Shown here: positions 16,593-47,743 of the stretch, piece by piece
How the letters are laid out: each line of letters opens with the position of its first letter
Numbering within the stretch: the stretch's first letter is position 1
Assembly: GCA_964036045.1 (NCBI GenBank)
Contig: OZ038378.1
Coordinates: forward strand, 183,210,001 to 183,274,000
Reading direction: 5' to 3'
Length of the DNA stretch: 64,000 nucleotides
Source: Eutreptiella sp. 'Long Island Sound 2002'
Taxonomy: Eukaryota > Protista > Euglenida
Notes under the pieces: generated by a model
Told to the model about the DNA's origin: nothing
The model's input: only the letters and a program-made list of their open reading frames with translations
Databases searched by the model: none
Program-made: the position numbers and the translations under genes

Positions 16593-16865
16593 CTAGACAT
16601 CGAAATGCCGGTCGGACACCGGGCTGCTGCCGGGCTCCATGCCCTCCGATGATATGCAGCAGCCGAACATCTTCGGCTTCCGCTTCCGCACCTTCACGGA
16701 CGTGACGTTGACCCGGTCGTAGCGGCCGTTGGAGACGAGCTGCGGCACGGGGACCAGTCGCGGGGTCTTGAGCTGCTCCATCACGACGCAGACCCGCGTC
16801 CGGCGCCGCAGCTCGTCATAAGAGAGCGGGAGCGCCAGGTCAAGCCCACGGCAGTGCGTCAAAAC
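16593..16865 (-). CDS. Receptor-ART exon 12: C-terminal tail
   Basis: Acceptor cttccag|GTTTTG after a pyrimidine tract. [51 protein letters not shown], with TAG at 16595-16593. Confidence 0.82.
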   Translation of the reverse strand, partial: VLTHCRGLDLALPLSYDELRRRTRVCVVMEQLKTPRLVPVPQLVSNGRYDRVNVTSVKVRKRKPKMFGCCISSEGMEPGSSPVSDRHFDV

Positions 16866-19800
16866 CTGGAAGTTGTGGCCGGCCGAAAGGGAGAGGGAGG
16901 GAGGGGGGATAGGGCATGGGGGGGGGGGGCATGCAGGCGGGGCAGAGGGGGCCGGGCGACAGGGAACGGCAAGCACCCGTGAGGGAGGAAGGCGGGCAGA
17001 GGGGGCAGCATTACCCAATATCCGCTGCAGGGCCAGCCACCGCTGTGGCAGACAGCGATCACAGCAAATTCGCCAAGAGCAATGACAGGGCCTGTGCTTG
17101 TTTCATCTTTCGCGACAGACAGGCAATCCAGTGGCCAGCTCATGATTTAGGCAGACAATTCAACGGTACTCGAAGGGCAACCAACGGCGGTTGGTCCGTA
17201 ACCAACGACACTTGAAGAGTGACCGACGGCGGCGGAACGAGAAACGACGGCAGTTGGGGGTCAACAATTTTTAACAAAAAAAAGTCCACTCAAAAACGCC
17301 CTGAACCCCGACCCCGAACACATCACCACTGGTTCCCAGTGGAATGCGCCCTCTTGCACAAGGTAACGTCACTGCGAGGCGCCTCGTCACGAGTGGAGAT
17401 TACTGCGAATGCGATGGGGTTGAAGGCTGAGCAAGGGTGTGTGTGAGGGGGGCGGGGTGTGGGGGGTTGGGGGTCCAAAATTCCCCGGCTTGAGGGGGGG
17501 ATTTGGGTTCCCTGTCGAGTTCTAAGCCAGTGGAATACACCGAAGTGTTGGGGCAAATCCCCGTTCCTCCTTCACCAGGTGAAGGGACGACGTGTGAACG
17601 TTCACCTGCAGCCAGTGCTCAAGCAACAGACTTTGGCCATGAACCACCGGCGGTGGGCGTCTGACCGCCCATCGCCGGGGGGCTAACTGCTGGCTCAAAG
17701 AGCTCGTGCGAAACCACACGTTTTTGGCCCAGTTTTGAAAGTGACGGTGTCCGTGCCTCTGCCAGTCCCTTGGACAGACCGGCCCCTTGCGAAGATGCGG
17801 TTTGGTTCCTGCCACAGAGCCAAAGGCGTGCCTAAGGGAAAGGGAGGGATGAGAGACCTGGGCCCATTCGCAAGGATTGTGCCCGAGGCCCAGGGTTGTA
17901 CAGCGCGGCGGTGCTGTGCGGTTGCCTGGTCCTGGTCGTGCAGGTTGTGTTGTGGGTCGCGCTCCAGCGATGGCCTGTTCAAACAACACTCGTGCGTGGT
18001 GGGCGTTAACGTGTACTGTAGGGCCCCCACGGTCACGGCGTGAGGTGGGGGTGTCTATCCTTAAGGGGCTGCCCTTAGTGAAGCACAACATCTCGCAGAG
18101 GCGACAATTCAGGAGAGCACACGGGACATCAGCCTCCCCTCCCAAATATTGCTGGCGCCAACATGTGTGAGTGTCAGCCCCGCATGATCACAGGAACCGC
18201 TGGCAATGGGACTGTGCAATGAGATTATGTCTCAGGTTTGGTGACGACCTGCCGGCCTGGGTCAAGAAGAAGGGCAGCCTGATGGATCATCGGGTCGGGG
18301 GGGTGGTGGTCCTGAAGGGAGCTCACCGCACCTCCCCCCCCCCCCACCCTCACCCGTTGAGCAATGAGGCCGGACAAATCCGCAACGCCCATGGCGATGC
18401 TTGCAGGTTCGCTGAGCGGGCCGTCGTCATGTGGGGGGCGATGGTGTAACCCAATGCAGTGGCCCTTGGGGCTTAGGGACAAACTTGAGGCCTCCTCCTT
18501 CAGATCAGGACAATGGCTGTGGCGCTCTGAGGTCAGGGCATTGCTGTGATGCAACACAAAGCAAAGACGCCTCCTTCCAAAACCGCATGCACCGACTCAG
18601 TCTTGCCTTGTGCAAGCCATGGCACAGCAACATAACACCCCGCCGCACTGCACCGCACCACCACACAATTGCCGAGCTCACCACTTCACGACACATGGGC
18701 ATGGGCATCTGTTGGCACCGCAGGAACACATGCGGGCCGATGGGCCTGGTCAACAACTGCCAGACAGAAGGTGCCCAAGCCCAGGCAGTCAGGAAGGGGG
18801 TACCTCCGTGACCTTCACCACCATGAACTCGGAGCCGGGGGGCAGCAGCAGCTCCTCTTCCTCTGGGTACTGCGAGAACGGCCCGACGTCCTCGTACGTG
18901 TGGATCTTGATCGCGTACAAGATGCCCATGGGCCTCCGCGCGAGGAACGAGTGCGCCACATCGAATGAGCAGGTGGTGCTCGTCAGGCCCTCCCACGGAA
19001 AGATGGCCCCGGGCTGGTTCTTGAAGTACGTCGCCTGGATGCATGGAGAGATGGAGAGACTGAGAGACTGAGGGAGGGAGGCCGGGAGAGACAAAAAGAG
19101 AGACACAGACAAAGATGATGTGCTTCACTAAGGGCAGCCCCTTAAGGATAGACACCCCCACCTCACGCCGTGACCGTGGGGGCCCTACAGTACACGTTAA
19201 CGCCCACCACGCACGAGTGTTGTTTGAACAGGCCATCGCTGGAGCGCGACCCACAACACAACCTGCACGACCAGGACCAGGCAACCGCACAGCACCGCCG
19301 CGCTGTACAACCCTGGGCCTAGGGCACGATCCTGACAGGCAGATGGACAGGCACACAAACACGCTGGGAAAGAGACCAACAGACAAACGAAGAGACAAAC
19401 AGACAGACAGGCAAGCAGCCAGGCATTGTGTGGCCACTCTCAGTCCTGCAGTCCTATGGTGCCAGGATGTGAGACCTGAGTGAGCTCGATGGGGAGCCCC
19501 CGAAACACCCACCGAGGCTCTGGCCATGCCACGCATGCCATCTGCTCCATCACGTAGTAGATGAATGGCCGCCAGAATCGCAGGTTCTTGCGCGTGCGCA
19601 TCGCCTCATTGCTCCTCAGATACAGTTCGCTGTCCAGAGTGTACAAGAAGAAGACAAAGATGGCCTGCGGATGCACCGGTCCGCTCTGCGCCCGCAGGTG
19701 ATGATACGGCGACTCCACATCCGATGACGCATGGGAGTCAAATCGTTGCGGGCGCGGCGAGCATAGCCCGCGCGCCACCTGCGCGCACACCTTGATCTTC

Positions 19801-20120
19801 CCCTTCCAGATCAGCTCCTCCATGGGGTCATTACCCTCCTGTGCCCCTTCCCCTTCCCCTTGCAGCTTCTTCAGCGGCCACAGAGTTGGATGCCTTCCCA
19901 GCTGCTCCAGCCAATCCTTCAGTGGGCCCGGTGTGAAACCCACTGGGAACAGGTCCTCTGAGGGGTCCTCGTCGTCCAGCAGCACCTCGCTCAGCCCTAT
20001 GCGAAGTTTGGCAGGACCAAAGCTGTCACCTCAACCACGCCCAAGCCCCAGCCTCACCAAGGTCTCTGACCCAACAAATCCCACCAGCACACGCAGGTGC
20101 ACGCACAAACAAGCGTGCGT

Positions 20121-20163
<43 letters not shown>

Positions 20164-20180
20164 CACACACGGACACACAC

Positions 20181-20241
<61 letters not shown>

Positions 20242-23200
20242 CGGGACCCTCAAGAAGCAACAACAGCGTCAAACTGGAAAGGGGCTCTTGGGTCAGGGAA
20301 TGTTGTATTTACGAGGGAGACACAAGTGCAGCCTGAGCAGGGCAGTACCATTTGGCTCAGATCACTGATCACTGATGCCTCTTTGGTGCTGGAGCCTCTG
20401 CTTTCTGTGGAGTCAGAACCTCTGGCGGCGGCGGCTTATGTGAGTTGCGTGCTGGCTCTGCCATGCTCCATCTGAAATGTGTGTGTGTGTGTGTGTGTGT
20501 GCTTTGTACTATTAACGAGGGTTGAAGGCTTTTAATGTTCTGGCCGCTCTTCAACGGGAGGGTTAGGGGTTAGCGGGTTAGAGCCTGCCTGTGGCCTGCC
20601 CTATCCCTCCCATGGCCCCCCGGTGTGTCGCGGCGCGGCGGAAGGATGTCCGCCTCGGGTTATGTGCCCTCCTCTGAGGCCCTCCCGTGACCGTGCTGCT
20701 GCTCCTGCGCGCCCCCGCGCGGCAGCACTGCTGCCCCCGGCCCTGCCGGTCCCCCGCCCCCTCCCCCAGACGAGGGAGCCGGTGCGCGCACCGGCCCTCC
20801 GAAGGGCATAGCGCCCATTTGCTGCTGCACCCCCCCCCCCCTGAACCGGCAGACACCGTTGCCCCCCCCCCCCCCAGCACCCTGGGATGCCCCTCGTGGT
20901 GGCGGCTACAGCAGTGCCGCACCCCCCTGTGCCCCTTGCATGACTTGCATGCTGGGGCCCGGTGCTCATCACACAGGGTCTGCATAGGGCGCCGTGGCTG
21001 CCCTGTTCATTTCCCCCCCACCCGCTGTGCCCTTTTTTGTGGGGGGGAGGGAGGGAGAGGCTGCCTTGGTTGCCCTGGCACAGCCCCTTGGGGAGGGCAG
21101 GTCTTGCTCCACCTGTACTGCGGAGGTCTCCGCCTCCGCCCCCTGCGCGCCGCCCCCCGAGGGATGGGGGTGGGGGTCGACCGATGTCCCCTGCTCCTGC
21201 CCCCCCCCCCCTTGGGGGGGTTCGCGGCCCCCGGGGGGGGGTCTACGCCCTCCCCTTTGGCTGATGACCCCGCCCGCGCCGCCGTCAGCTGGCGGGAGAT
21301 GTCCCCGAAAATATCCACCAGCCCTCGGGAGGGGGGGGGGGATGGGGACGCGGTTGTACCCCCCCCCCCCCCCCCACGCGTGTGTGTCCGCCCGTGACGC
21401 CTGTACTTCGTGTGCCCCCCCTTGCCCGGCGGTTCCCCCTGGGAGGAGTGGGGAGGGCGGGAAGGGCCGCTTGAGCCCTCCCCGCTCGTTTAACATACCG
21501 GAGCCGCTTAGGCTGTGCCCCCCCCCCCCCCTGGAGACAGTTGGTGGGGGGGGGGCTGAGAGCCCCTCCGGGCGTCGCGCGCACCCGTGCTCTGGGCGCG
21601 CTCGTCGCGCCACGCGCGCTGGTGAGGAAGATTGCGAGTGGGGACGTTTGCGCGCGCTTGGCGAGTCCCGTGCGGCCTGGGACGCCGCCACGGAGCCGGC
21701 TCCGGATGGCTGCTCGGGCTGCAACCACGCCCGCAGCGCTTGCGCCGCCACGCGCGCTTGTGCCGCGTCCATGCGGTGCCCTTCGTGAGCCCGCTGGCAG
21801 CAGTGCTCGGCGCCCCGCTGCACGCAGGCGGCACAGGGCGGGGCCCAGTGTCGCGCACACAGGGCCACCCGCGGCGGCGGTGCCACGCGGCCCGCGCCCC
21901 CGCCTCCTGCCCCATGCCGGTCGCGCTGCACCTGCCGGCGCAGCAAGCGTTGGAAGGGCCGCAGGGGCTGCTGCCTTGGTCCTGCCGGGGGGAGGTAATC
22001 CAATAGGAACACATCCTGCCGCCCCGCTCCCGGCTGCGCCAGGCGCCGCGTCCATAGCGCGTGGCAGTGCGCCTCCAGCTGGCGCATTTGGAACAGCATG
22101 GCGTCCGGGCGCGTGAACAGTGGGCGCGCCGCCCTCCCCACACACCTGAAGCCCCCCAGCGGCAAGAGGGATTTGGCCAGCCACACCTCCTTGCCCCGCA
22201 GAAGGTCCCCTGCTTGCAAATGCGGCTGCAGCGCATCCAGGGCCATTTTCAGCACTTGGCCCCTAGTGATAGCGGCAATGTGACCCCCCGCAGCCGGTGG
22301 TCGCTGGGGGCCGGGAGTGCCCGCTCCGCGTGGGCCTCGAAGTCCAGGGCAAGCTCCACGTACGTCACGTGGCCCTGCCCTGGTAGCCACCGCAGTCGGC
22401 TAGCCCACTGCAGGAGCGCCATCGCGAAGGACGCCTCCCACGGCCACCCCGGCGGCGGGCCGGCGCGCAAAGCTAGCGGCGCCGTTGGTGGCGCCGGGGG
22501 ATGTGGGCCCGCACCTAGTTGTCCCCAAGGGTAGCCCCGGCGCGCGTCGGGAGGGCATGTGCGCGCGATCGCAAAGACCGAGGGGCCCGCGCCCACGTCT
22601 CGACGTGCCGCAACTTCCGCTCCCATGCGTGCTGAAAGCACCGCCAAATACATGCCATACAGGCGGTACATGAGCCGCCCCGCTTGATCCACCTCCTCTG
22701 GTCGGACCAATGCTGCCGGCAACAGGCCCGTTGCGCGCAGGCACACCGGCCACGCTGACGGGAGGGCCAGTGCCGGCAAATGCGCCGCCTCGGCCCGCAC
22801 CAGCGGGAGCCAGGCGGCACGCCGTGTATGCCATTGCGGGCAGTCCCATAGGAGATGGACCTCCGTCTCCGGGGGGCCCCCGCAGTAGGGGCAGGCCGCT
22901 AAATCCGACATTTGATGCTTCCGGACCCGCGCCCCTGTCCACGTCGCCCCGGCTTGTAGTGCTCGCAGCAACGAGCGCTCCGTCTCCGAGCTGGCCACCA
23001 ACATGCCTGGGTGCAGGCGGGCCTGCATACCTCCGCCCCTAGCCCCCCAAAGGTGGCTTGTACTATTAACGAGGGTTGAAGGCTTTTAATGTCCTGGCCG
23101 CTCTTGCGACGGGAGGGTTAGGGGTTAGCGGGTTAGAGCCTGCCTGTGGCCTGCCCTATCCCTCCCCTGGCCCCCCGGTGTGTCGCGGCGCGGCGGAAGG

Positions 23201-26200
23201 ACGTCTGCCTTGGGCTTAGGTCACCTCACTCGACGCCCTCCCATGCGCCATCACCGGCGCCTTGCTGCCCCCCTGGTGCGCCGGGGCTCGCTCTAGCATC
23301 TCCATGTGGCCGGCGCGGGGGCCCACCCCCCGCCCTCCGCTGTTTCCTGTGGCCGCCAACGGTGGCAGCCCCTCCGAAATGTCCCGTGCTGCCGGTTGCA
23401 GCTAGGCTGGGAGGGGGTAATTATGATCTCCCTCCCCCGAGGAAAACCCTCTGTGACCTGATCCCGGGCCCGGGCAGCGATGTAGCCCTCCCATGACCCC
23501 TGCTGTGGGCAGGGAGCCCGAATTCTCCCCAAAGTCTCGCGTGAGACCCGGAGCGAGGCGAAGGGAGAAGGTCGTTGTCCCCCCGCCCCCCCCTCCGTCC
23601 TTTGCCGGGCCGGCGGCTACCGCCGCCAGAATTGACCCACCTGTCACACACACGGCGGGCGCCCTGAAAACCAGCGGCGGCAGTATGCCACCTCCTGCCC
23701 CCTGCCCACGTGGCCTTGGGGGCAGTGGGCTAGGGTCTGGACAGTGCAGGGCTGGGGTTAGGCCCCACCCCTCGCCCGTACATATGGAAACTGTCCCCCA
23801 TGGTGCCGCACAGTGCAGGCAGCCCGAGGGTTAGCGCAGGAAATTGAGCCGCTGGGGGGGCTACTGGGCACCCCTCCCCCTCTCAAACTGTGACTCACAA
23901 GACCTAGGCGGTGTCCTGGGCGGGTTAGCGATGCAAGCACGGGGGGGGGGGGGCAGAAAGGTGCAGCCCCCCCTCCCACAAATCCTGCAACAATAGCTCC
24001 AGCACTGCTGCATACAGCTCAGCAATGCACCTGCGGGTGCATGCCTCCTCCTCCTCCAGCGCCATCCATGCGCACCCAGAGCTCGCATAGATGCCCCCCA
24101 CCTTCCCTCGGTTCCCCTGGTGGCGCTGGGGACAAGGGGAGGGGACGGTTGCTGCACCAAGTCTGGCAGGCTGAACTCTGGAAAGTCCAGCCCTGCTTGC
24201 AGGGGGGGGGGTCAGAAATTAGGGGCTCTGCCCTACACTCTACCCCCCCCCCCCCCCCATCAACTTCCTTTTTTCGGCCGTTGCTGCAGCTAGGCCAGAG
24301 CCGGGGCCTGACAAGACTGGACCCCGGAACAGGTCAGAGCCAGAGCCGGGGCCGGGCAGAGCTAGACCCCCCAACAGGTCAGTGCCGGGGCCTGACAAGA
24401 CTGGGCCCTGGCACAGGTCAGAGCTATGGCCTGACAAGACTGGACCCTTGAATACTTCCTCGCCTACAGTGTTTGCGATGCAAACATTGGCACAGTGCGC
24501 CGCAGCCGCTTGCACCTCCAGCTTAACTTACAGGGGGCAGGGCTCATCCGCCCATGCCCCCACTAGGCCCCACAGGTCCAGGGGGTCATTGCGTTGCAAG
24601 CATACCATGGCCCCCTGCTCGATGAGGCCCAGACCGCTGCGCGCTGCCGCCGTCGACTCCACGTGGTCCAGGGCGGCGTCGGCTGCCGATGCCGCCGCCC
24701 GTGTTGTGTCCGAGACCGACACGACGATGGTTGCTGCCGCTGCCACTGCTGCCGCGGTCGCTGCCGCTGTGGATGCCGCAGCCAACGACGCGACCGCTCG
24801 ACGCACCCTGGCGCGGGCTCGCCCCTGTGCCCTCCGGCCCGGCTCGCCCCAAGAGGGCGTCGTGGGCGGGGGCACGCATGTCAGCATGTTGCCGGCAGCT
24901 CCGGCCACTCCGCCGTGGCGGGCGCTTGCCCCGGCTGGGCCCCGGCGCGCGCAATGTGCACGATAGCCTCCTCGTCCTCGACCGCTTGTTGAATATCCAC
25001 CTCCGCCTTGTGGGCCGTGATGCCCTCCTCCAGAGCCATCGTTTGCTGCAGCAGGGACACCGCGTCCTTCTTCCTCCGAGGAGGCGGGGGCAGGCATACC
25101 AAGGCCCCCCGCGCATTCATGCTGCCAATGCCGCCCCTGGCCGCCAACGCTGCCGCCGCAAGCACTGCCGCCGCCGCCATTGCTGCCGCGGCTTTCACGA
25201 CGGGCTCGGGCTGGGGCTGGACCTCCTTCGCGTAGGGCTGCTGCTGCTCACGCATTTGACGATGTTCTTCTCGCCACTGTCGCGGAGTCTGCCCCGGGGG
25301 TAGCCAGAAGTACTCCTCCCACGGGTGGGCCGTCTCCTCACTTTTGTACGCGACTCCCCCCCCCCCCAGTAGAAATGGGCCGAAGGCCCCCCCGGGGGGG
25401 GGGGGGGGGGGGGGGGGGGGCATTGGAGGGGGGGGTTCAGGGAGGGGCGATGGGGGGGGGGGGGCGGTCGGGAGGGTCAGTGGGGGGGGGTGCAAGTGGG
25501 GCGATTTGGGGTGGTGGGGGGGGGGGGGGCACAGGCTCCCGTTACCTCCCCTTGCCCTCCCTCTGGGGTGAGAGCTAGGGCTAGGGTTAGGGCTAGGGTC
25601 ACCGAGCTGGTGGAACCAGTCTTGGTTTTATAACCCTTTTTAGTGTCTAGGGTGGACCTACCAGGTTTAGCAGCAGCAGCAGCAAGCAGCAGCAAGCAGC
25701 AAGCAGCAAGCAGCAAGCAGCAGCACGCGCGAAATGGGCAAAAATCAGAACTACGTCCTGGTGGTTTTGGATTCTGCTGAAATTTTGGTGGATGATACCT
25801 ATGGGTGTGAAGTACAATCACACAAAGTTTGACAAGAAACTCAACGGTGGCGGCCGGCAACACAATTCGCAAGTGGCGGACCTCAGTTTCAAAAACTGCA
25901 GTTTAGGGCCAAAAACAGCCATTTTTGGGCCAAAACAGCCCTGGAACACATTCAAAACGGCCAAACGAAGGGAAACAGTGGGTACACTCCATGTGCGGCT
26001 TGACTTCCCCGTGTCAACAAGCTCTTTGCGGCCCTCTAACTCCAAGATATGTCCCGGAAACGGCCCAAAAAGGCCCCACAAGCTCCAAATGCCGGCAGCC
26101 ACAAACCAAGAATAGGCCATATCTTTGGCTACATGGCTCAAAATGCGATTCCGAGGGCACCTACTCCACCCGCAACCCCCCACTTTTTGTGGTTTCCACC

Positions 26201-28458: not shown

Positions 28459-31400
28459 GAGAGAATGAGAGAGAGAGAGAGAGAGAGGAACAGAGAGAGA
28501 CCCAAGCACACACACATGCACGCACCGTTGGAATCCGTAGGCTGCAGAATCTCAGGGCGGTGCTTCAGGTCCAGCAGCCACTGCACATCGCTGTTGCCAT
28601 CGTACTGCCTCCGCACGGCCTCGCAGTGGCGCATAGCCTCCAAATCCTTGGCATTGGGCACAAGTTTTGGGTGTACGCTATCCCCAAGACCGCGCTCCGT
28701 CCACGTGCACCACAGCGCCGCGCTGTGCCCGTGCGGCTCCGTCACCGCTGTCGGGTTGGCCCCGGCCGCCAGCAGCTTCTGGAGCGCGTCGCGGTTGTGA
28801 CACAGGGCCGCGTGCGTGAGCAGCAACACGCTCTTGGCGTCTGAGATTGCAAAGAGCGCAGCGTGCCCGAGGGCCGGGGGCGTCGCGTCGTCGAGGGCGA
28901 GCTCGTGCCGCAGCAGGTCCGCGTCAAAGTCGTGCCCGTAGGAGATCGCCGTCATGACCTCCGCGAGCAGCCCGTCCGTGAACTCGTCGTACGCGTGCGG
29001 CTCCTTCCGGCGCGCCTTCAAGTGATTCACCAACTGCTCCGTCTCGTTCTGCTGGTCCTGAGGCCGCACGGACGGGCACTCACGGGCCGATGCCCGGCCC
29101 CACGGTCCCTGACCCGCAGATGGGGCACCGTGGGACCACGGGGACCTCTTGAGGGCCTGGTCGGCCAACAGGCAGTGTGTTTGGCCCCAGAGGCGGTCCA
29201 ACGGGGTGGCCGTCTCGGGACACATGCGGACTGCGATTTTTGGGACTGGGGGATCCAAAAATTCGACATGGGTCATTTGCGCACTTTACTGAGGCGCATG
29301 GAGTGAGACACCCCCGTTGCAAGGGTCTTGGCAGGGCCTCAAACGCCAACAACAGATGAACGGTCTCATTCGAGGCCCCAATCAAGCCTTTTTTGTGATA
29401 CGGGGGGGGGGTCTTGGAGGAGGCAGGCACTGCTTTTGTCCTACCCCTACCCTAAGGGGGGGGGCGGTCCAGTCGAGGAGGCAGGCACCCACTCACCGCC
29501 TTGTGCACCTCTAACAACATCCAGCTCAGGGGTGGAATAGATATTTCAGTTTGAAACTTTTCCCCCATAAAATCTCCACCTTGCCCAGCCTGTTGCATGA
29601 ATTACCATAGCGCCCTAGATTCGAACCCAGCACCCCTGGGGTGCAGGTATACTATAGTGCCGCTAGGGTACTTACCAGATCTGGCAACCCACTGCTGAAT
29701 ATTTTGGTTACAAATATTTCCCCCAAAAAATCCCAGCCCACTCTTGGCCTACCCCCACCGGGGGGGGGGGAGGGTGATTCCGCTGAGGGCACCCAGAATT
29801 TCACAAAAGGCAGGCAGGCACCCCCCCCTGGGGGAGGGTATCCAAGGCACTAAAAAAAGGCTTGGCCCCAATGTAGTGCAGGGTCCGAGGGAAGCTGCTG
29901 ACCCCCCCCCCCCTTACCCCTTGTCCAAGACAGTGTGGCTCAGGTGCTCCCACAGGTGAGAACCGTACAACACTACCTTTGGAACCCCATGGGGTCTAGC
30001 AACCCGTAAATGACCACAAGTCAAGAGACGTTTAGCCCATGGCTTGCATGTTGTCAGAAGAAGTGGTTTTTGGGGGGGCAAAAAATGTTTATTTCATGTG
30101 ACAACGATGTGTATTTTGCTCCACAGGTGCTGTTCTCCCTGCAAAAATGTTCACTTTCATCAACATCAACATTTTACCACCACTGGACACTTCTGACACC
30201 GCCATCCCCCCCCCCCCCCGTTGCTTTTTCAAAAGCGATGTTGTTCATTCATCACAACACTTGTCCAAAACCCCCTCCTGCCCTGGTGCAGTCCCACTCA
30301 ATGAAATAGCTTCGTGCCCCCCTGCCCCCCCCTCTCCCTGCCCTCTGCATGGACCCCTTCCGCCCCACCCCCCACCCCCTGTGCTTCAACAAATCCCTCA
30401 CAGAACAAAATGCTCCCGTGGCGCAGCAGAAGGACGGACAGTCTGGGCAGGGTGCACCAACAGGCAAGGGACGTCGGCCATCCAAGTTGACCCGCTGTGC
30501 GCTGTACCATCAGCAGCAACGGTCTGCAGCAGCTGCCGCGCATGCTGCTCACGGACTGCGACCTGGACGCCGTCAACACCCCCCGGCCGGTACCATCCCC
30601 AGCGGGCGGCACTCCCCAAGTGACGTGGCTGTGGGTGTCGGGCTGGCCTTGTCGGCGGTTCACGTCCATTCGAAGGAACGAGCAGCGCTGCCTTCGATTT
30701 TGCTTTGATTGTTTTTGTGGCGTTTCCAGGCGCCAGCAGCACCACCAAACGTGCGCAGTTAGAGAGGGGGGCCGGGAGGGGGGGTTGGCAGCAGACAAAG
30801 GTGGCCTAGGCCGTGCGGGTCTGCCAGCCGTGGCAGGCCTGCGAGGGGTCAGTGGAACACCCCGAGGGAGGGGGTCCTGCAAGCACCGCAGGCTTGCCAG
30901 GCATCAGCGCACCCTCCCACCCCGACCATCACCTGCCACACGACCCCCCAACACCACCGGCCCGCCCGGACGACCGCCGGCAATCCCTGCACCAACCTGC
31001 GGCCATTGCCATGTGGGCACGGCCACGGCGGCACGGGATCGGGGGGCACGGGGCAGCACAACACCGCCCGACGCAACACAATGAGGCATACACCCGCGGA
31101 GGGTAGGGGAGCGAGGGGAAGGCGCAACACACACACACACGCGCGCGCGCGCTCGCGCCCTGACGCCGACCGGTTTGGCGTGGTATTGGGGCAGGACGAT
31201 TTTGCGGCGAATGAAGAAACAGGGGCCGTGCGGGACCAGCGCAATGCTTCGGCATGCACAGGACACAGGCCCAACGGGCTGCGTTTATGAGGGGGAGGGG
31301 GGGGGGGCTTTGGGCCCTAAGACCGACGCACTCAAAAAAGACCCACTTTTGGACTCGGGTAAAATCACATTTTCTTTGACGACGCGATCCCTCGCAAGCC

Positions 31401-34400: not shown

Positions 34401-37400
34401 GCCTTCAGAAACGGGGAGGGGGGGCGGGCTGGGCCATAAAACAATAGGCCGGTTGTGGAGGATGTAAGAATAGCTCCCGGGCACTCGGCCAGATCGGCCA
34501 ACTGCTGCTGCCGGGGAGTCGCCACAAACCCGCGGCGTTGAAGCCCTGTGTTGATGAAGATCACCCGGGGCCATGTCACACCCAGGCCCCTTTCACTCCT
34601 GCTGGGTCTCCAGTCGCCCGCATGACGCGCCGCGCGCGCGCCGCGTCCAGTGCTCATGTCGGCGATCTCAGGCGGTTGGTGCGGGGCCTCCTGACCGAGG
34701 CCTGGGTCATGCCCCTGCCACTCCGAATGCGTGTCGCGTGGTTTCAGGGGGGGGGGGGGGGGTTAAGGCTTGCCTCGGCAGCGGCCAAACCCCTGGATCC
34801 CACCCAGACCGAACGCGCTCGATGTCCCGCGTCCGCGAGAGGGCCCTCGTTCCAGGGGCACAAGGGCCCGGGAAGCTGGTCCTGCACTGTGCCGTGGGGC
34901 GGTTGGGGTGCTGCAGGCGAAGTGCGATGGACGGAACCTCCGGAACACCGGCGCAAACCCGTCACCAACGGCGTCTGGGCAGGTGGTGGTTCGTGCCTGG
35001 CACGCCCCAGAGGGTGCCAGGGCTGCTTTTAGGGGGTGGCGGTGGCGCCGAGTTTTAGGAGCCAAAGAAAATTGTTGATGAGCTGAAGGTCCCGACGAAA
35101 ATTTGGTCCCTCTTTTAAAGGGAGGGGGGATGCCCCCCCCACCCCCCAAGTAGTGCCGAGTTGTGAAAAGGAGCCCTGGTGCCATCCCTCGAGGGAGCAG
35201 AGACCCCACTCCCCACAACAAAGCTGCAATGCAGTCGGGGATGCGTGTGTGCGTGCGCACGTACGCGCGCGTGCGGCCGTCCGCTGAGTCCAACGCTGTT
35301 GACTGGGGGGAGGGAGAAGCCCCCAATGCCTTTGCCAACGGGTCCGGTGCGGTGGAGCCGACACCTGCGTCGCCGTACGCGGAGATGAGTTTGATGAGGT
35401 CCTGCTCCGTCACGCCCCCCGGCACGCGCTGCGGCGCGCGCGCGGCGGGCGCACGGCTCACCGTCCGCCGGAGCACCACGTGCAGCGCGTTCGCGTCGCG
35501 GTCGTTCTTGACCCGGACCTGCACGGCCGCCAGCGCCGGGCCCGGCACCTCCAGGAGGGCCTTGACGGTGGCGTAGCAGTGCGCCGGGTCCGCCTGCGTC
35601 ACCAGCGCCTGGTGCAGCGGGCTGTCGCCGCTCTTGTTCAGCACGCACAGCGTGGCCTCCACCTGCTCCGGGAGGTACGCGCTGCAGAGGCGCGCCACCA
35701 GCGGCCGCATGGCGCACACGCCGTCCGTCCGCGCCGCCGCCGCGTGGAGGGGCGTGTCGTTGGTGCCGTCCCGCTTCATGGGGCTGGCGCCGCACCGCAG
35801 CAGCGCCTCCACCACCGCCACGCGGCCGTGGCGGGCCGCGAGGTGCAGCGCCGTCTGCAGGTACGGCTTGCGCGCGTGCACGGGGACGCCGATGAAGACG
35901 AGGACGTGGACCATGGCCGCAGGGCACCAGGCGGAGGTGGCCACCAGGTGCAGCAGCGTGACGTCCTGCATCTGGAACCAGAGCATCAGCCCCACGAACC
36001 AGCCGATGACCCCCGACATGTAGTAGATCCCCAGGTGCGTCCAGCGCGCCATGTTGCACAGCAGCTCGTCGTGGGAGAAGCCCCCCATCGGCAGCTGCCC
36101 CTTGGAGCTGAGGAGGATGGAGTGCTCGATGACCTTCCAGACGAGCATCGCGAGGGCCCCCACGTACATGCTGGCGAGCGGCAGCACCGCGCCGACGACG
36201 CGCCACGGGACGAAGATGAAGGCGCGGCGCAGCAACGCCACGAGCTCGTTCGCCAGACCATTGGCGCATCCCCACACCAATCCGAACCCCATGTAGCTGG
36301 ACCCTGCGGGGTGAGTGAGGGAGTGAGGGAGGGAGGGAGGGAGGGAGGGAGGGAGGGAGGGAGGGAGTGAGTCAGTGAGGGAGGGAGGGATTTGAATTTG
36401 GAGTTGGATTTGGAGCACACAGAGTGCTCCTCAAGGGGCCATGACAGGCACCCGCGCTCACTGCCACCGAACTCAACAACTCACCAAACCCGGATTTTGG
36501 AGTCTGGGAAATGGGGAAAATGGCCAAAATGGAGAAAAGTGGAGAAAAATGGGGGGGACTGGGGGGGGGGGATAGTGGGCATAGCACACGGGATGTGGGT
36601 TATGGAGGGTTGTGGCGGGACCTGGTTGAGGAAAATGGGACGAAAATGGGAGAAAATATTCGAAAAAATTTTCAGTCCCGTTTTTCTCATTTTTTCTGGA
36701 GGTTGAAGATCTTCCCACAATTCCCTTTGTAAAAATCGGCACACCGTGCTCACCGACAGAAAAAATGGGAATTTTGGTCACTCAACCGATACTTACTGTC
36801 ACGGCGGCTAGTGCGGATACTTGCCATGAGTGCTGATGCATTCCCCTAGCCTGCCAAGCTGCTGGGAGAGGGCAGGGCCTCCACTGCCTCCTGACCTATG
36901 CGGCTGTAATTGCCTCTCCGCTTCTCCGGCTGGCCCCCGGGGGGTCGGCCAGGGCACCCCCACTAACACCAGGTGCCCACTCCCATCTTCAGTGATGGAT
37001 GGCGGAGTTCCTGGGTCCAGCCCCCATGCGCTGCTCCACTCCACACCCAGTCCCTGTCACGGACTTGGGGGTAGTCAATCCCTTGTTGCCCACGGTCCGT
37101 GTGTGCCTGTGGGTGGGTGTTTGGGGGGTACCAGCGTGACCGGGTCCACAGCTGCGCCATGCCTCAAATATCCCTCTGGAGCGGCTGTTCCCCTTGGGCC
37201 AGGTGGCTGGTCAGTTTGGCATGCAGATGCCAAGGCACTCACTGAAAGTGGTTTCCCGCACCCCATTTGGGTCCAGCGCACCGGGCTGCCCCCCTTCCTT
37301 CTCCTCGGGTCCAGGGCTGGGCCCATGCCTGCGGTGCGCTCTGCGGTGTGAGGTCGCTGAGGAGAACAGTGGATGTGTGGTTGGCCTTGAGAGGGAGGGA

Positions 37401-43400: not shown

Positions 43401-46400
43401 CAAGGGGAGATGTAGCGACGTTTCCAGGCCCACTTTCAGTGTGGCCCTCAATCTGCAGGGGGCATGTAGCCGTATCCAGACTCAATTGTAGTGTGGCCCC
43501 GATACAGCACAGGTTATGCGGCCACAATCCACATTGGCATTCGGTGTGGCCCCAAGGCACTTCTTCCCTTGCTGTACCACCGCCTTACTGCGCATGATGT
43601 CCACCATCCGCCTGTTGGTAGCTCCTCGATGGACTGACCTGCATCAAGCCCGCCGGGTGCCCAGGAAGCTCCCCTTTTGATCATCCAGCGGGCGGGATGG
43701 CCGCCGGCCCCCACCCCGAAACCTCACCGACAGTATGGCCCTTTCCTGAAGCCCAGGCCTCGGGGCAGGAGAGGGCGGACCGGATGAAAGGCGGTGTTTG
43801 CGACGATGCCCGGGAAGGCGCCAAGGAAGACTGCTCCGGCCAGACTCGAGGACACGTCCCCGAACGAGACCTGCCCCGTCATCACAGAACTGACGGTGAT
43901 GGACGTGTAGATGGCGAGCACGGTCCCGCAGATGCCCGCGACGGCGCCCACGCACACCGTCCGCACGAACCCGTAGCGGGGCATCCGGAGGGGCACGCCG
44001 CGGGCCTCAATCAGGTACATAACGAGGACGGGGAAGGTGACCCAAGGGCTGACAATGATGAGAATGCCCCCTGCAAAGAGGGCGACGCATCCCACGACGG
44101 TGGCACGCCGCAGCCCCTGCCGTCCCTTGTCAGGGGCACTGGCACGCACAGCGCTATCGGCACGGAAGGTAAACCAGTGTGTCGATTCGCAACGCACAAC
44201 ACCAAAGTGAAGTTTCATCGCAACATTCTTCTGTCATGTCTCCTTATCTCAAACGGCCCACGAGTTCCACTCACGCCGTTTCCCACCAAAAACGCGAGCA
44301 AGGCGAACGTGAGCAAGACTAGTGACACTGCTGACGAGTGTGCACAATCTTTCCGTGGCGGGCGAGGGGCACGGACAAGGAAAGGGACACACCCTCGATC
44401 GGAGCCGGAGGCCTGGGGGTGAGGCTGTTATGGAACTGCCGGAACGCCACCCACACCGCGACCTGGAGGGTGAACCCCAACACCCACGCGACGGCCGCGC
44501 TGCGGTGGTACCCGGCGCACAGGAGGACGAACGCCACGAGGCAGAGGCCCGCCACCGCCAGGGACTGCGCGGCCATGACGGTCAGAAGGGCCTGGTCGAA
44601 GGTCTCGGGCTGGCCGCCGTTCAGGTAACAGTACGACACGGCCCCCGAGATGTTGAAGGAGGAGAACTCGTGGGGCGTCAGCAGCGACAGCGTTGGCAGC
44701 CCCGTGGGGAGCATGCGGAAGCGGGGGCTGATCCACAGGGGCCAGGGGTCGGCGGGGTCCGGGACGGGACACACGTACGTGTAGCTGCTGGTGCGATTGC
44801 GGAGCTTCATCGCGTCGGGGCTGTCGGGCCCCGCCTCCACGTGGAGAGTGCTGGTGGTGAGGTCGGTCGGGGGGGCGGTGAGGGAGTCCCGGTACTTGAG
44901 GGCGCAGTGCTGGTTGTAGAGTTTGCTGTGCGTGAGGCTGAAGCAGCGCACCGCTTCGCACGCGGCCTTGCACTCCTGCGGTGTGCGACGCGCGGAGGCA
45001 GGGCCTTGAGACGAGCACCAGGCGGATCCCTGGTCAATGCCCCGCGCCCGCCCCATAATGTTATCCTCCGATGTCTTCTGGTGTCGTGACAGCTGTCGTT
45101 CAGTGGCTGGGGCCCGTCTAGTGCTTGTGCTTCAATGCCGGTCGGTCCCCCCTGCCCCCTGGCACACGCACGGCCCAACACAGGGGAAGCAACGGTCAGA
45201 CGGGGATCCCGTGCCTCGACAACGCCGCGCTTGCCCGACCCACCGGCGTACCGGTTCTCACGGGGCCTGGCCCCATTGCGGGAACAGTCACATCCAAACA
45301 AGACAGAAGTGGGTTGCTGTCGCAAGACACACGCTGTTAGGAGCAGCAGCGACTCTTCACAGGAATGACCCGGCCCCTTTTGCCCACGACGACCAGATCG
45401 CAAACTGAACACTACCCGCTACGTCAGCCAACCGCCAACCGCGGGTGTCCGCGCCTGGGCTGTCCTTTCAGTGAAGGCCCTCAGGACAGCCCAGAAAGGT
45501 CCCGTAGCTCAGCTGTCGTGCATTGGACACCTGGCGGAGAGGTACCCGGGTCGAATCCCAGGGGCACGGGGTGAACAACACTCGGACCGTCCTGGCACGG
45601 CACGAGTCCAACAGCTGGGCATCCACCGTTTACAACCCACGGCCCCCGTACTAACATTGGTGGTTCGCTGAACCTGTAGACCGCCAAGCAGCAGGAACCT
45701 CCCGTTTGCGCAAGCACAGCCTTGACGAAGCACGACGGCGCCTTGTTACACTTGTTCGTCTGACCGCACTTTTTGGGGTCGAGAATGCAAGAGGACGTGT
45801 TTGTCAACTACCGGCCAATACATTGGATGCTCCTTGGCAGAAGTGGATATAAAGGGGTGGGGTCCTCCCCCTCCGATTACAAATTACCAATCACGAAATT
45901 CGGCGGACCTAAAATGTGCTCCCAAGACTCCAGGGACGGGGTCCCTAATACCGGAACGTAGACCCCTCATCATGATCCCCATTACTGATCATTTCGAGGT
46001 ACGTACATGGGAAACCTTTTTTCAAAATTTTACCTCGGGGCCGCTTTGCGGCCCACTTTATGAGCCATCACCAGTCCTCACCATGAGCCATCACCAGACT
46101 GTCCTTTTCCGAGGACTCATGTGGGAAAATCGTAAGTCGTAATTCGTAATCACGGCCCCCAGAAGAGCCCCCCCACCCCAACATAACGATTGCGTCACTC
46201 GTACGTCCACCACTGACGCCCAGGACCTCACCTCACCTCACCCTCAGGACGGCGCGAGTCCAAAGCAAAGGACCTGCAGCGTCACATCGAAGCGGGACCA
46301 GATATCATAGGGCCCCGGGCGATAGTGATGGAACCCCGTCCTGTACACGGCACTGCCCCACCCCACGTGCACGGCCGACGGCTGCCAGCAGTCAGTGTGG

Positions 46401-47743
46401 TACGTGATCCCGTCCAGACCGAGCCACTGCCCGCCAAAGCCCTGCGGCACCGTCACGTGGCCGTCGGCGGTGATGGTGACCTCGACGGGGGCACCGCCGG
46501 GGGCGAACACCCGGAGGTCCCGCGGGGGCCGGTGGCCGTGCGGGAGGGTGACGATGCGCGTCGTGTCCTGCGAGATCAGGGCGCGGCCATAGAGCGACAC
46601 GCGGGACGAAACGTTGGTGGACTGCAGGGGCCAGTCGGGGTCCTGCGCGGCGCTCGACTCGAGCTGGCGGCCGACCCCGACAGCGAAGGCGATGCCGCTG
46701 AGGCTGAGCCACGCCGCGGCCGCGGGGCCGGAGGTCCACCGGACGGCCCCATCGGGCGCGACGGTCACCTCCGCCGGGCCGGTGTCGGCGCGGACGGTGA
46801 ACACGCGGCGCGCCGGCGGGCGGCGGCCGCGCGGGAGGACGGCGACGGGGGTGACGCGGGTCGCGTTGGCCACGGCCCCTGCGAGAGCAACGGTGGGGCC
46901 GTCGGGGCCGTCTGGGCCCCAGAGGGCGGCGCGAGGGTACTCCGGTGCCGGGGCCGTCCAGGGGGGCTCCAGCGGCAGGGGCTCGGCCGCCGCCAGAGGG
47001 AACCGGACGGTGTTCAGGAACACCCAACGCGCCCCTCCCCCGGGGCCCTGCCACGTCAGGCGGCCGTCCGGCTCCACGTCGACGCGGGCTGGGCCCGCGC
47101 TGGTTGCGACGGCGAAGACCAGCCGCCCCTGGGGGCGGTGCGGCGCGGGCAGGACCGCAATGCGGGGGCCGGCGCCCGCGGCGGCCCTCACGGACCCCAT
47201 GAGCGTGACGGTGTGCCCCTCCCGCCGGGAGCTCGGCCGCAACTGGAACCGAGGCTGGACCGGAGTGGCGCTGGGCTCCCACCCTGGCCCCAACGGCAGC
47301 GCCAGCTGCGCGGCACCACCGCCGTCGGTGTCGGTGTGGGTGTCGAGGTACTGCGTGGGGTAGGGCAGGACCTCGACCTTGGCCTGGAAGTAGGGCTCGC
47401 GGGGCCACTGCACCTCCACGGCGGGGGGGCGGGGCTGTGCCTCCGGGTGCTGCTCCACCACCACGGCCTCCCCACTCCAGAATCGGAGGGAGAGATTCCC
47501 GGAGCGCCCGTGCAGGTCGTACCGCCAGTTGCAGGCCCTTTGGTGGCGGCACCTCTCGTGCAGGAGGATGGCGCTCGAAGGGGTGTCGCCGCAGCTGTCG
47601 TCGAGGCTTTTGTTATAGCGGTACGCCGTGTCGCCGCCGAGCATTTGGATCTTGACGCGGCGGTGGTAGAGACCGGCCCACGGGATGCGGATGTAAACGA
47701 CCACTGCGGCGCAGAGCCAGAACAAGTACAACACATAGTTCAT
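16593..47743 (-). CDS. Spliced gene (12 exons, ~2105 aa): putative multi-pass membrane receptor with ectodomain repeats, PAN-like domain, ankyrin repeats and C-terminal R-S-E ADP-ribosyltransferase
   Basis: Exons 47743-46274, 45029-44391, 44125-43781, 42170-41555, 36303-35365, 32817-32562, 31900-31633, 30562-30508, 29230-28526, 19996-19476, 19034-18804, 16865-16593. All introns are GT...AG; cumulative phases (0,0,0,1,1,2,0,1,1,0,0) agree at every junction; total 6318 nt is divisible by 3 with no internal stop. Exon 8 and the exon 2/3 boundaries are the least certain, and extra symmetric exons in the large introns cannot be excluded. Confidence 0.78.
17560..18093 (+). mobile_element. Probable retroelement fragment carrying one arm of the 202-bp inverted repeat
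   Basis: Coding-like remnant ([12 protein letters not shown].., reminiscent of LINE RT 'PK.K..RPI'), continuous with the repeat arm at 17886-18087. Assignment is weak. Confidence 0.35.
18183..18590 (+). repeat. Dispersed ~400-bp repeat, copy of 13223-13650, inside intron 11
   Basis: Colinear, high identity. Confidence 0.9.
18804..19034 (-). CDS. Receptor-ART exon 11: ART catalytic core (STT and E-x-E)
   Basis: 77 codons: [61 protein letters not shown]. Acceptor atccag|GCG; donor GAG|GTACCC. Symmetric, phase 0-0. Confidence 0.93.
19476..19996 (-). CDS. Receptor-ART exon 10: N-terminal half of ART domain (YT..lN.aLR helix and catalytic Arg in VFRG)
   Basis: ORF 19440..19985: [18 protein letters not shown]...FWRPFIYYV...RWVFRGL. 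Acceptor gcatag|GGCTG (phase 1, fits exon 9); donor CAG|GTCTCA. Confidence 0.9.
20120..20240 (+). repeat. (CA)n microsatellite
   Basis: Direct observation. Confidence 0.98.
20506..23040 (-). mobile_element. 5'-truncated non-LTR retrotransposon (zf-RVT plus C-terminal extension) in intron 9
   Basis: ORF 22249..23028 has [21 protein letters not shown] and [11 protein letters not shown]; it frameshifts into ORF 20969..22390. The 3' end reads ..CCTCGTTAATAGTACA with no poly(A). Confidence 0.85.
23060..24290 (-). mobile_element. Second 3'-end copy of the same LINE family
   Basis: 23061-23215 is ~95% identical by eye to 20507-20660, with the same terminus. The 5' limit is approximate. Confidence 0.7.
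24480..25560 (-). mobile_element. Retroelement ORF1/N-terminal-like coding remnant
   Basis: Pro/Ala-rich frameshifted ORFs 24881..25495 ([12 protein letters not shown]..) and 24528..25097 (..[10 protein letters not shown]). No splice sites fitting the host gene; lies among TE fragments. Confidence 0.45.
25385..25530 (+). repeat. Long poly-G/G-run tract
   Basis: More than 25 consecutive G plus further G-runs. Confidence 0.95.
25570..26590. mobile_element. Non-autonomous element with 13-bp subterminal inverted repeats (ACCGAGCTGGTGG), flanked by TTAGGG-like repeats; copy 1
   Basis: ACCGAGCTGGTGG at 25601-25613 and its reverse complement at 26490-26502. The interior is homologous to the reverse complement of 39290-40850. 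No long ORF. Confidence 0.75.
26750..27575 (-). mobile_element. Third LINE 3' end (27184-27575) joined to a putative element 5' region/ORF1 start (26750-27170)
   Basis: TACTATTAACGAGGG at 27185 with diverged downstream similarity to 20507; ORF 26750..27019 [18 protein letters not shown]... Confidence 0.5.
28365..28500 (+). repeat. (GA)n microsatellite just inside the 5' end of intron 9
   Basis: Direct observation. Confidence 0.98.
28526..29230 (-). CDS. Receptor-ART exon 9: linker and degenerate ankyrin repeats
   Basis: ORF 28299..29276: [39 protein letters not shown]. Acceptor atcgcag|TCCGC; donor AACG|GTGCGT followed by a (TC)n tract. Confidence 0.85.
30508..30562 (-). CDS. Receptor-ART exon 8 (inferred 55-nt micro-exon, [18 protein letters not shown])
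   Basis: Inferred to bridge phase 0 (exon 7 donor) to phase 1 (exon 9 acceptor). Bounded by tccag| and |GTACAG, with GC-rich codon-like content. The pyrimidine tract is weak. Confidence 0.5.
31633..31900 (-). CDS. Receptor-ART exon 7: ankyrin repeat plus basic helix
   Basis: [35 protein letters not shown] within ORF 31576..32169. Acceptor gttcag|GTGC (phase 2); donor GAG|GTGTGC (phase 0). Confidence 0.88.
32562..32817 (-). CDS. Receptor-ART exon 6: ankyrin repeats
   Basis: ORF 32558..32833 with [11 protein letters not shown] and GKTPLFYTL. Acceptor tctcag|GCTTC (phase 1); donor CTCAG|GTAAAG (phase 2). Confidence 0.9.
33062..33275. mobile_element. MITE-like element with imperfect terminal inverted repeats
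   Basis: GGGGGGGATA..GGGATAATTTCGTGGGGAAATTTCG versus ..CGAAATTTTCCCCGGCGAAATAATCCCCACACGAAATTATCCCCCCC. Confidence 0.55.
35365..36303 (-). CDS. Receptor-ART exon 5: last TM segments and ankyrin repeats 1-5
   Basis: ORF 34763..36418. Acceptor after a (TCCC)n tract, ccgcag|GGTCC. Ankyrin motifs [54 protein letters not shown]. Donor GCAG|GTGTCG. Confidence 0.92.
36315..36390 (+). repeat. (GGGA)n microsatellite forming the polypyrimidine tract of the exon 5 acceptor
   Basis: Direct observation; (TCCC)n on the coding strand. Confidence 0.95.
37520..37770 (+). repeat. Degenerate (GGCGGTTGG/GGTGGTTGG)n low-complexity repeat
   Basis: Visible short-period G-rich repeat. Confidence 0.85.
37917..38307. 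mobile_element. MITE-like element, ~74-bp inverted arms plus an internal direct copy
   Basis: Arms at 37917-37990 and 38233-38307 (GACATGGAGGTATGGAGGTACCAAGGGGAGTGTCATAGG / reverse complement); third copy at ~38052-38105. Confidence 0.75.
39280..40850. mobile_element. Copy 2 (inverted) of the subterminal-inverted-repeat element, with internal ~165-bp tandem repeats
   Basis: ACCGAGCTGGTGG at 39292-39304 and CCACCAGCTCGAT at 40814-40826, followed by GACCCTAACCCTGACCCTAA. Internal repeat units start near 39548, 39711 and 39878. Confidence 0.75.
41555..42170 (-). CDS. Receptor-ART exon 4: TM segments and loop
   Basis: ORF 41262..42254. Acceptor (tccc)n..ctctcag|CTCTGC. Hydrophobic [18 protein letters not shown] and [20 protein letters not shown]. 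Donor ATAG|GTGCCT, phase 1. Confidence 0.86.
43781..44125 (-). CDS. Receptor-ART exon 3: three to four TM segments
   Basis: ORF 43724..44218, strongly hydrophobic ([30 protein letters not shown]; [17 protein letters not shown]; [15 protein letters not shown]). Acceptor ACAAG|GGA (alternative CAG| at 44116, same phase). Donor CCG|GTCCGC. Confidence 0.8.
44391..45029 (-). CDS. Receptor-ART exon 2: PAN/apple-like Cys domain, linker and first two TM segments
   Basis: ORF 44319..45056. Acceptor GACCAG|GGATCC in phase 0. [20 protein letters not shown] motif, then [18 protein letters not shown] and [18 protein letters not shown]. The donor position (GGT|GTGTCC) was chosen to fit phase and is less certain. 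Confidence 0.82.
45498..45570 (+). mobile_element. tRNA-like SINE head (degenerate A and B boxes) in intron 1
   Basis: GGTCCCGTAGCTCAGCTG (A-box-like) and GGGTCGAATCCC (B-box-like); no clean cloverleaf. Confidence 0.4.
46274..47743 (-). CDS. Receptor-ART exon 1 (490 aa): N-terminal signal/anchor plus 3 tandem beta-rich repeats
   Basis: ORF 46244..47743. ATG is preceded by a pyrimidine tract and CAG|CC. Hydrophobic start [18 protein letters not shown]. Repeats [30 protein letters not shown] / [30 protein letters not shown] / [30 protein letters not shown]. Donor CAG|GTCCTT, phase 0. Confidence 0.88.

Follow-up and report, generated by a model that had tools for sequence, protein, structure and literature searches.

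The 64,000-nucleotide window analyzed here (Eutreptiella sp. 'Long Island Sound 2002', contig OZ038378.1) contains a gene on the minus strand (47743-16593) that spans ~31 kb, has at least 11 exons and at least 10 introns, and ends in an ADP-ribosyltransferase (ART) domain. The stretch of DNA carrying the catalytic motifs probably encodes the catalytic core of an arginine-modifying mono-ADP-ribosyltransferase of the cholera-toxin-like (ARTC, R-S-ExE) kind. The original prediction had recognized such an enzyme but had not seen that, instead of standing free, it forms the C-terminal domain of a membrane protein.

The ART domain is encoded by three exons, all on the minus strand. Exon A (19476..19996) encodes the N-terminal half of the domain, is collinear with paralogs elsewhere in the genome, and contains a conserved lead-in, a Y-x-x-x-N-x-A-M-R helix, W-R-P-F-I-Y, and V-F-R-G. 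The helix cited in the original prediction ([17 protein letters not shown]) lies inside this exon. Its likely acceptor is the AG at 19998-19997 and its donor the GT at 19475-19474; the stretch used in the tests described below was 19985-19476. A GT-AG intron of 441 nt (19035..19475) leads to exon B (18804..19034), which is 231 nt (77 codons) long, has an AG before it and a GT after it, is in phase 0 at both ends, and encodes the catalytic core, in which the L-T-S-T-T is followed by the ARTT loop and its E-x-E. A second GT-AG intron, of 1,938 nt (16866..18803), is followed by exon C (16593..16865; acceptor AG at 16867-16866), which is also collinear with the paralogs and completes the ART domain with its last strand and helices before adding a 50-residue tail and a TAG stop codon at 16595-16593.

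All three exons align residue for residue with intronless paralogs. At the positions of both junctions, A|B and B|C, those paralogs simply read through, and the junctions are in phase 0 and neither add nor remove a residue. The earlier claim that the ART motifs are split over two exons is borne out by canonical splice sites and by paralog read-through. Exon A also holds an in-frame insertion of 81 nt, or 27 hydrophilic residues (19665..19745, minus strand), that no close paralog has. Its position corresponds to a surface loop that connects two helices in the N-terminal subdomain (residues 65-71 of the paralog model described below), and the insertion could be either a loop insert or an unrecognized short intron.

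Reading of the sequence placed the R, S, E, and E codons where the original prediction had put them, on the minus strand in two exons joined in phase 0. The Arg of V-F-R-G (19500..19502, codon CGG), the R of R-S-E, is conserved in 21 of 21 paralogs, as is the Ser of L-T-S-T-T (18978..18980, codon AGC), the S of the triad. Four Glu codons (18863-18852) make up the center of Y-P-E-E-E-E-L-L, the second and fourth of which form the E-x-E (18852..18860), with the -2 Glu at 18860-18858, a Glu in the middle, and the catalytic Glu at 18854-18852, which is followed by L-L-L-P-P. This register, which had been proposed from the single copy, is fixed by the paralog alignment, because one paralog reads E-E-G-E and another reads D-E-E-E. 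Among the genome copies, the -2 position is Glu in 20 of 21, the middle residue varies (E, A, G, D, K, or R), and the catalytic position is Glu in 19 of 21, both exceptions being gapped, degenerate copies. The residue before the Arg on strand beta-1 is aromatic (Y or F) in all 21 copies, and the S-T-S-type motif on strand beta-2 has S, T, or A at its third position. Both the catalytic Glu, on strand beta-5, and the -2 Glu are found in the window copy; judged against the 21-copy alignment, the motifs that the family conserves, catalytic and structural alike, are all intact there. In the proposed reaction, NAD+ would be bound via the Arg (19502-19500) and the Ser (18980-18978), nicotinamide would be cleaved off by the catalytic Glu (18854-18852), and an arginine positioned by the -2 Glu (18860-18858) would receive the ADP-ribose on its guanidino group.

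The family assignment is carried by profile searches. As a single-exon query, exon B scored 21.6 bits against PF03496 (ADPrib_exo_Tox) and 20.3 bits against PF01129 (ART), each just below the gathering cut-off (23.4 and 22.3 bits, respectively), and in the PDB it matched HopU1 (E, 9e-4) with the S-T-T and E-E-E aligned. Exon A alone gave nothing meaningful in Pfam, NCBIfam, and PDB searches. A match of exon B to the NCBIfam family XopAI does not show membership, at 17 bits versus a cut-off of 300 and with only the ExE-loop region covered. Against a profile built from the 21 genome paralogs, exon A scored 107 bits (E, 5e-32; positions 4-131) and exon B scored 89.7 bits (E, 1e-26; positions 134-205). 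The two exons match successive positions of the profile, which is more than chance. The HMM check suggested with the original prediction came out positive for uninterrupted paralogs, which are 43-66% identical to the window copy and pass PF01129 with 27.2-39.2 bits; more distant copies in the genome reach up to 59.8 bits.

The predicted fold agrees with this assignment. An AlphaFold (AF2) model of the ART domain of one paralog (L012:7024-7776, with 65% identity to the window copy in exon B and 43% in exon A) had a pLDDT of 92.9 and a pTM of 0.88. Foldseek matched this model with a probability of 1.0 to HopU1, Vis, Tre1, Certhrax, C3, and ART2.2. The ART fold, a split beta-sandwich that binds NAD+ and has a helical N-terminal part, was recovered in the paralog, with R-S-E ARTs among its matches; the family profile to which this paralog belongs is matched by the window exons at positions 4-205. 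When the 21-copy profile was searched against the PDB, the E values were 3.6e-21 for Vis, 5.8e-18 for rat ART2.2, 6.5e-18 for Tre1, 2e-14 for HopU1, and 2.4e-10 for SpvB. At the E-x-E position, the profile aligns with E-A-E in Vis and Q-E-E in ART2.2.

Overall, the best profile and fold matches are Vis from Vibrio splendidus, Tre1 (a Serratia T6SS effector), HopU1 from Pseudomonas syringae, and SpvB. They have in common with the window copy the aromatic-R-G, the S-T-S/T, and an E-x-E followed by hydrophobic-L-x-P, and HopU1 even has the same S-T-T and E-E-E. However, these proteins are small secreted or injected bacterial toxins and effectors, whereas the window holds a spliced nuclear algal gene in which the ART is the tail of a multi-pass ankyrin membrane protein, identity to them is only 17-20%, and the family has a conserved N-terminal extension without a counterpart in the bacterial toxins. 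A bacterial toxin gene or contaminant was rejected because the gene has GT-AG introns, sets the ART among ankyrin repeats and membrane helices, and lies on a 201-Mb contig. A vertebrate or human contig, to which (CA)n repeats and a high GC content had pointed, was likewise rejected given the size of the genome, its giant ORFs without introns, and the euglenid relative described next. A scan near the 3' end of the gene found no bacterial promoter or terminator, but such a scan has no relevance to a eukaryote. Assignment to the secreted bacterial ARTs does not fit the nearest relatives found outside the assembly, which include a transcript from the euglenid Ploeotia vitrea. This expressed relative, which carries R-S-E-K-E, came from an exhaustive search of exon A against 1.84 billion representatives that gave 11 matches, consisting of genomic ORFs of the same assembly and a few distant ones; no spliced product or transcript of the window gene was among them. 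Word-index protein searches with the ART region of the long paralog, a 314-aa ART region, and the 21-sequence profile returned only ORFs of the same assembly and one metagenome protein (E, 4e-10), with no transcript among them.

The Glu at position -2 from the catalytic Glu has been described as deciding arginine specificity, with R-S-EXE as its mark, and when close ART relatives are compared two by two, arginine is modified by the E-x-E member only in all five pairs (PMC3102197). The rule underlying the original prediction, that E-x-E denotes an arginine-specific ART, agrees with that review. E-x-E correlates with arginine specificity rather than proving it, and the reading of an arginine-specific mono-ART is supported, with activity and acceptor residue predicted from the motifs. 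An active transferase with some other acceptor, be it another side chain, a nucleic acid, or a small molecule, is very unlikely in our estimate, given the behavior of the five pairs. In its favor, specificity is assigned here from the motif only, the family is <20% identical to any characterized enzyme, and the sequence of the ARTT loop is unlike those of all solved relatives. Nevertheless, the best sequence matches (Vis, Tre1, HopU1, and SpvB) have an E-x-E and, going by the names given by their depositors, modify arginine.

R-S-E ARTs hydrolyze NAD+ when an acceptor is absent, and the domain might be competent yet act mainly as an NAD+ glycohydrolase or self-modifier, its output being NAD+ consumption or self-regulation. 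Consistent with this are the fold and motif set common to rat ART2.2, the second-best PDB match of the family profile, and the occurrence of the domain in giant, variable multidomain ORFs at the at least 150 matches described below, a pattern that is known too for conflict-system effector domains. We consider such an output unlikely, since the -2 Glu, which governs transfer to arginine (PMC3102197), is kept in nearly all family copies whereas ART2.2 aligns a Gln, and since the adjacent ankyrin repeats suggest recruitment of protein partners. Transfer to arginine remains the preferred reading of the domain.

The rest of the gene gives the ART domain its context. By tblastn, residues 4-1861 of an intronless 1,866-aa paralog can be followed in order along the window gene. 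The first coding exon (46274..47743, minus strand) starts with an ATG at 47743-47741 that has an in-frame stop upstream, and it encodes an N-terminal hydrophobic segment and ~470 residues of presumed ectodomain, with 41% identity to residues 4-481 of that paralog. The exons that follow on the same strand have approximate boundaries. Three of them, found by tblastn and hydropathy, encode most of the predicted membrane helices (44984-44364, 44104-43784, and 42167-41556). Another (35237..36298) encodes the last membrane helices, as judged by hydropathy, and the first ankyrin repeats (Ank_2, 58.4 bits), and two short exons (32800-32621 and 31896-31741) continue the ankyrin repeats (Ank, 32.7 bits; Ank_4, 37.2 bits). 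A linker exon (28551..28874) located by tblastn, for which there was no Pfam match, then joins the ankyrin repeats to the ART domain.

Hydropathy of two full-length paralogs indicates one N-terminal segment and nine membrane segments ahead of the ankyrin repeats, and the window exons have membrane segments matching these, although the topology is based on a crude hydropathy count. An ESM Atlas search with the membrane region of a paralog gave no usable match. As predicted from sequence, the product would be ~1,900 residues long and would consist of a hydrophobic N-terminal segment, a domain of ~500-600 residues, about nine membrane helices, ankyrin repeats, a linker, the ART domain, and a short tail. 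The N-terminal domain is presumed to be extracellular; with that domain outside, the nine helices that follow would leave both the ankyrin repeats and the ART on the cytosolic side, and the ART domain is probably cytosolic. In the proposed mechanism, the repeats would bring in the substrate, and control or localization of the enzyme would fall to the membrane and outer parts.

This architecture also bears on the resemblance to the vertebrate ecto-ARTs (ART1-5, PF01129), whose Pfam family threshold is passed by the full-length paralogs and one of which, rat ART2.2 (structure 1gxy), is the second-best PDB sequence match and a Foldseek match as well. The ecto-ARTs are small enzymes that act outside the cell, either secreted or attached by a GPI anchor. 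The ART in the window, in contrast, follows nine predicted membrane helices and ankyrin repeats at the C terminus of a ~1,900-residue protein and is probably cytosolic; because of this topology, assignment to the vertebrate-type ecto-ARTs was rejected. Tankyrases, in which ankyrin repeats recruit substrates, follow the same logic of placing such repeats beside an ADP-ribosyltransferase domain. The likeness is one of analogy only, as tankyrases belong to the diphtheria-toxin-like H-Y-E clade, are soluble, and make poly-ADP-ribose, whereas the window protein belongs to the R-S-E clade.

The introns flanking exon B contain a 221-nt inverted repeat, with one arm in each (17873-18093 and 19113-19333; 99% complementary). 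A genome search found no other occurrence of the arms in the 2.28-Gb genome, and the window copy is the only one among the ART-bearing ORFs of the genome to have such a repeat around its catalytic exon. The repeat raises the question of whether this copy yields an active enzyme, since it could favor an isoform without exon B. If this exon, 231 nt long with both ends in phase 0, were skipped, the reading frame would be kept but the product would be without the S-T-T and the E-x-E; back-splicing would give a circular RNA. The locus could also be silent or decaying; stops are present in two close ART copies on contig 17, and no transcript was found in the exhaustive exon A search. Against this stand the eleven exon pieces, all of which are open, the canonical splice sites at the three ART exons, the intact catalytic and structural motifs, and the lack of any evidence for repeat-driven exon skipping in euglenids. 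We therefore attach a low probability to a copy that makes no active enzyme and regard the domain as a probable arginine-modifying transferase.

The window gene is part of a large expansion. At least 150 ART-domain matches were found in the genome, many of them within giant receptor-like ORFs. The close paralogs (1,343-1,866 aa) have the same order of ectodomain, TM, Ank, and ART, with the ART at or near the C terminus and with Ank repeats and PF01129 above the cut-off, and more distant giant ORFs pair the ART with SRCR, PAN, FG-GAP, MAM, F5/8-C, or RCC1. The closest paralogs are single ORFs, whereas the window copy has its at least 10 introns over 31 kb. The ADP-ribosylglycohydrolase family PF03747, whose members are possible ADP-ribose erasers, has 30 matches in the genome.

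The number of places with an ART domain suggests that an enzyme known chiefly from bacterial toxins is used here in receptor-like signaling. Arginine ADP-ribosylation might even be a main receptor output of this euglenid, comparable to receptor kinases in animals and plants. The 150 or more membrane or giant proteins would then have diverse binding domains on the outside (phage-tail-like heads, SRCR, PAN, MAM, and F5/8-C) and an R-S-ExE ART on the inside, with ADP-ribosylglycohydrolases as the erasers, and the inverted repeat might switch the window gene between active and enzyme-dead isoforms. We offer this wider picture tentatively and regard it as doubtful.

Arginine ARTs of the R-S-ExE type are familiar among the toxins of phages and bacteria and among vertebrate ecto-enzymes, and according to a 2010 review they seem to be absent from unicellular eukaryotes (PMC3102197). 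The window gene has an intact R-S-ExE ART in an algal membrane protein that is shaped like a receptor, on what is presumed to be its cytosolic side, within an expansion of at least 150 matches. If the domain is inactive, the result would be an ordinary domain annotation with an unusual architecture. If it is active, a toxin-type enzyme would be serving as an endogenous signaling output, and the enzyme, its ankyrin adaptor, and the candidate erasers would offer a tractable system for intracellular arginine ADP-ribosylation.

The motifs from which the original prediction proposed an arginine-specific mono-ADP-ribosyltransferase (mono-ART) are all present on the minus strand when the sequence is read directly. 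They comprise a 17-residue helix in exon A (19985-19476), V-F-R-G (Arg codon at 19502-19500), L-T-S-T-T (Ser codon at 18980-18978), and a run of four Glu codons (18863-18852) that includes the two Glu of E-x-E (18860-18858 and 18854-18852). Exon A ends at 19476 and is followed by GT, and exon B (19034-18804) is preceded by AG and followed by GT. Beyond the two exons originally proposed lies a third ART exon, exon C (16865-16593), with an acceptor AG at 16867-16866 and a TAG stop at 16595-16593. The junctions of all three ART exons are in phase 0, and they match uninterrupted sequence in four intronless paralogs, with no residues gained or lost in the alignment.

In an alignment of 21 ART domains from the same genome, the Arg and first Ser columns are invariant (each 21/21), the first Glu of E-x-E (the −2 Glu) is found in 20 copies, and the catalytic Glu is found in 19; the Glu residues are missing only from two degenerate copies. 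The residue preceding Arg is Y or F in all 21 copies, that between the two Glu is E, A, G, D, K, or R, and that before the −2 Glu is variable. The retention of R, S, and E-x-E while neighboring residues vary indicates that selection picks out exactly these positions. According to a review (PMC3102197), the −2 Glu sets arginine specificity among R-S-E enzymes.

Profile and fold comparisons support the family assignment. Window exons were searched singly, and uninterrupted natural paralogs stood in for the whole domain. Exon A had no Pfam match by itself, and exon B by itself scored just under the cutoffs for both PF03496 (21.6 bits) and PF01129 (20.3 bits). The closest paralogs, 61 to 68% identical over exon B, are single uninterrupted ORFs of 1,866, 1,804, 1,343, and 524 amino acids in the same genome (L009:2922-8519, L010:2965-8376, L011:4723-8751, and L012:6316-7887); all four exceed the PF01129 threshold (27 to 39 bits), and all four match ankyrin repeats. 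A family profile built from the 21 ART domains matches exon A (107 bits), exon B (89.7 bits), and, weakly, exon C in collinear order and matches nothing else in the window. Against solved ARTs, the same profile finds Vis (3.6e-21), ART2.2 (5.8e-18), Tre1 (6.5e-18), HopU1 (2e-14), and SpvB (2.4e-10), followed in order by ExoT, XopAI, VsdC, C2-I, ExoS, and Iota. With the 21-domain alignment as input, AlphaFold gave a model of one paralog domain (L012:7024-7776; mean pLDDT, 92.9; pTM, 0.88) that matches HopU1, Vis, Tre1, Certhrax, C3, and ART2.2 in the PDB, each with a Foldseek probability of 1.0. Exon B alone also matches HopU1 (E value, 9e-4), with S-T-T aligned to S-T-T and E-E-E to E-E-E. The profile and structure tests named in the original prediction thus both came out in favor of its reading: judged in silico, the window domain is probably an arginine-specific R-S-ExE mono-ART.

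Outside the assembly, relatives are few. Word-index protein searches returned only ORFs of the same assembly and one metagenome protein, and an exhaustive search with exon A of 1.84 billion proteins returned 11; apart from the ORF of the window itself and paralogs in the genome, these were a few distant proteins, and no transcript of the window gene was among the 11. One of the distant matches is a transcript from the euglenid Ploeotia vitrea, which carries Y-R-G, S-S-T-S, and E-K-E and shares an N-terminal lead-in motif with the window ART domain. This relative is consistent with the contig being of euglenid origin, and the contig is not regarded as human.

The tblastn comparisons with the intronless paralogs place residues 4 to 1861 of the 1,866-amino-acid paralog in collinear order along the window gene, from 47728 down to 16611 on the minus strand, in at least 11 exon pieces, all of which are open. 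The gene begins with an ATG at 47743-47741 that has an in-frame stop upstream. Its first exon (46274-47743) and the ART domain are thus parts of one gene; that exon encodes about 470 residues that match no Pfam family, in addition to an N-terminal hydrophobic segment. Ankyrin matches lie in the exons at 36298-35237 and 31896-31741. A crude hydropathy analysis of the paralogs and window exons gives the order N-terminal hydrophobic segment, about 470 to 590 residues without membrane segments, approximately nine membrane segments, ankyrins, and ART. The context missed in the original prediction is a large, receptor-shaped membrane protein, of which the ART domain forms the tail, predicted to lie on the inner side; it would be cytosolic, provided that the N-terminal domain is outside.

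The window copy has at least 10 introns over 31 kb, whereas its closest paralogs have none. Two further copies, on contig 17 (L017 and L018), contain stops, and their exon B region is broken at another position; thus, intron positions differ between paralogs. Exon A carries an in-frame 81-nt insertion (19745-19665) that is absent from all close paralogs and falls in a surface loop of the modeled paralog domain; either an insert in this loop or a short unrecognized intron, possibly a nonconventional one, could account for it. Exon B is 231 nt long and in phase 0 at both ends, so its skipping would keep the frame while deleting S-T-T and E-x-E. The two introns flanking it contain the arms (17873-18093 and 19113-19333) of a 221-nt inverted repeat that is 99% complementary. 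Neither arm occurs anywhere else in the 2.28-Gb genome, making the repeat a local inverted duplication rather than a dispersed element. The window lies on contig 1, which is 201 Mb long; GC content is 50 to 68%, and both GT-AG introns and (CA)n tracts are present. Just upstream of exon A, within the 8.5-kb intron that separates it from the linker exon, lies a long (CA)n/(TG)n microsatellite (20030-20270). On both strands, the very GC-rich (68%) intronic sequence at 20500-24000 has numerous long frames without stops that overlap one another, the longest of 473 amino acids; these frames look like compositional artifacts rather than genes.

The ART core has at least 150 matches in the genome (the best 150 of 358 first-look candidates), many of the listed matches being in open frames of 1,000 to 7,500 amino acids. 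Domain content was sampled in three such frames: one of 7,554 amino acids combines F5/8 type C, RCC1 repeats, and a C-terminal ART; one of 5,993 amino acids combines SRCR, PAN, FG-GAP, MAM, P-domain, RCC1, and ART; and the third has an N-terminal ART with LRRK2-like ARM repeats. The ADP-ribosylglycohydrolase family PF03747 has 30 matches in the genome, which are candidate erasers of ADP-ribosylation. Missing from the original prediction was this genomic setting, in which the window ART domain is one member of a very large euglenid expansion.
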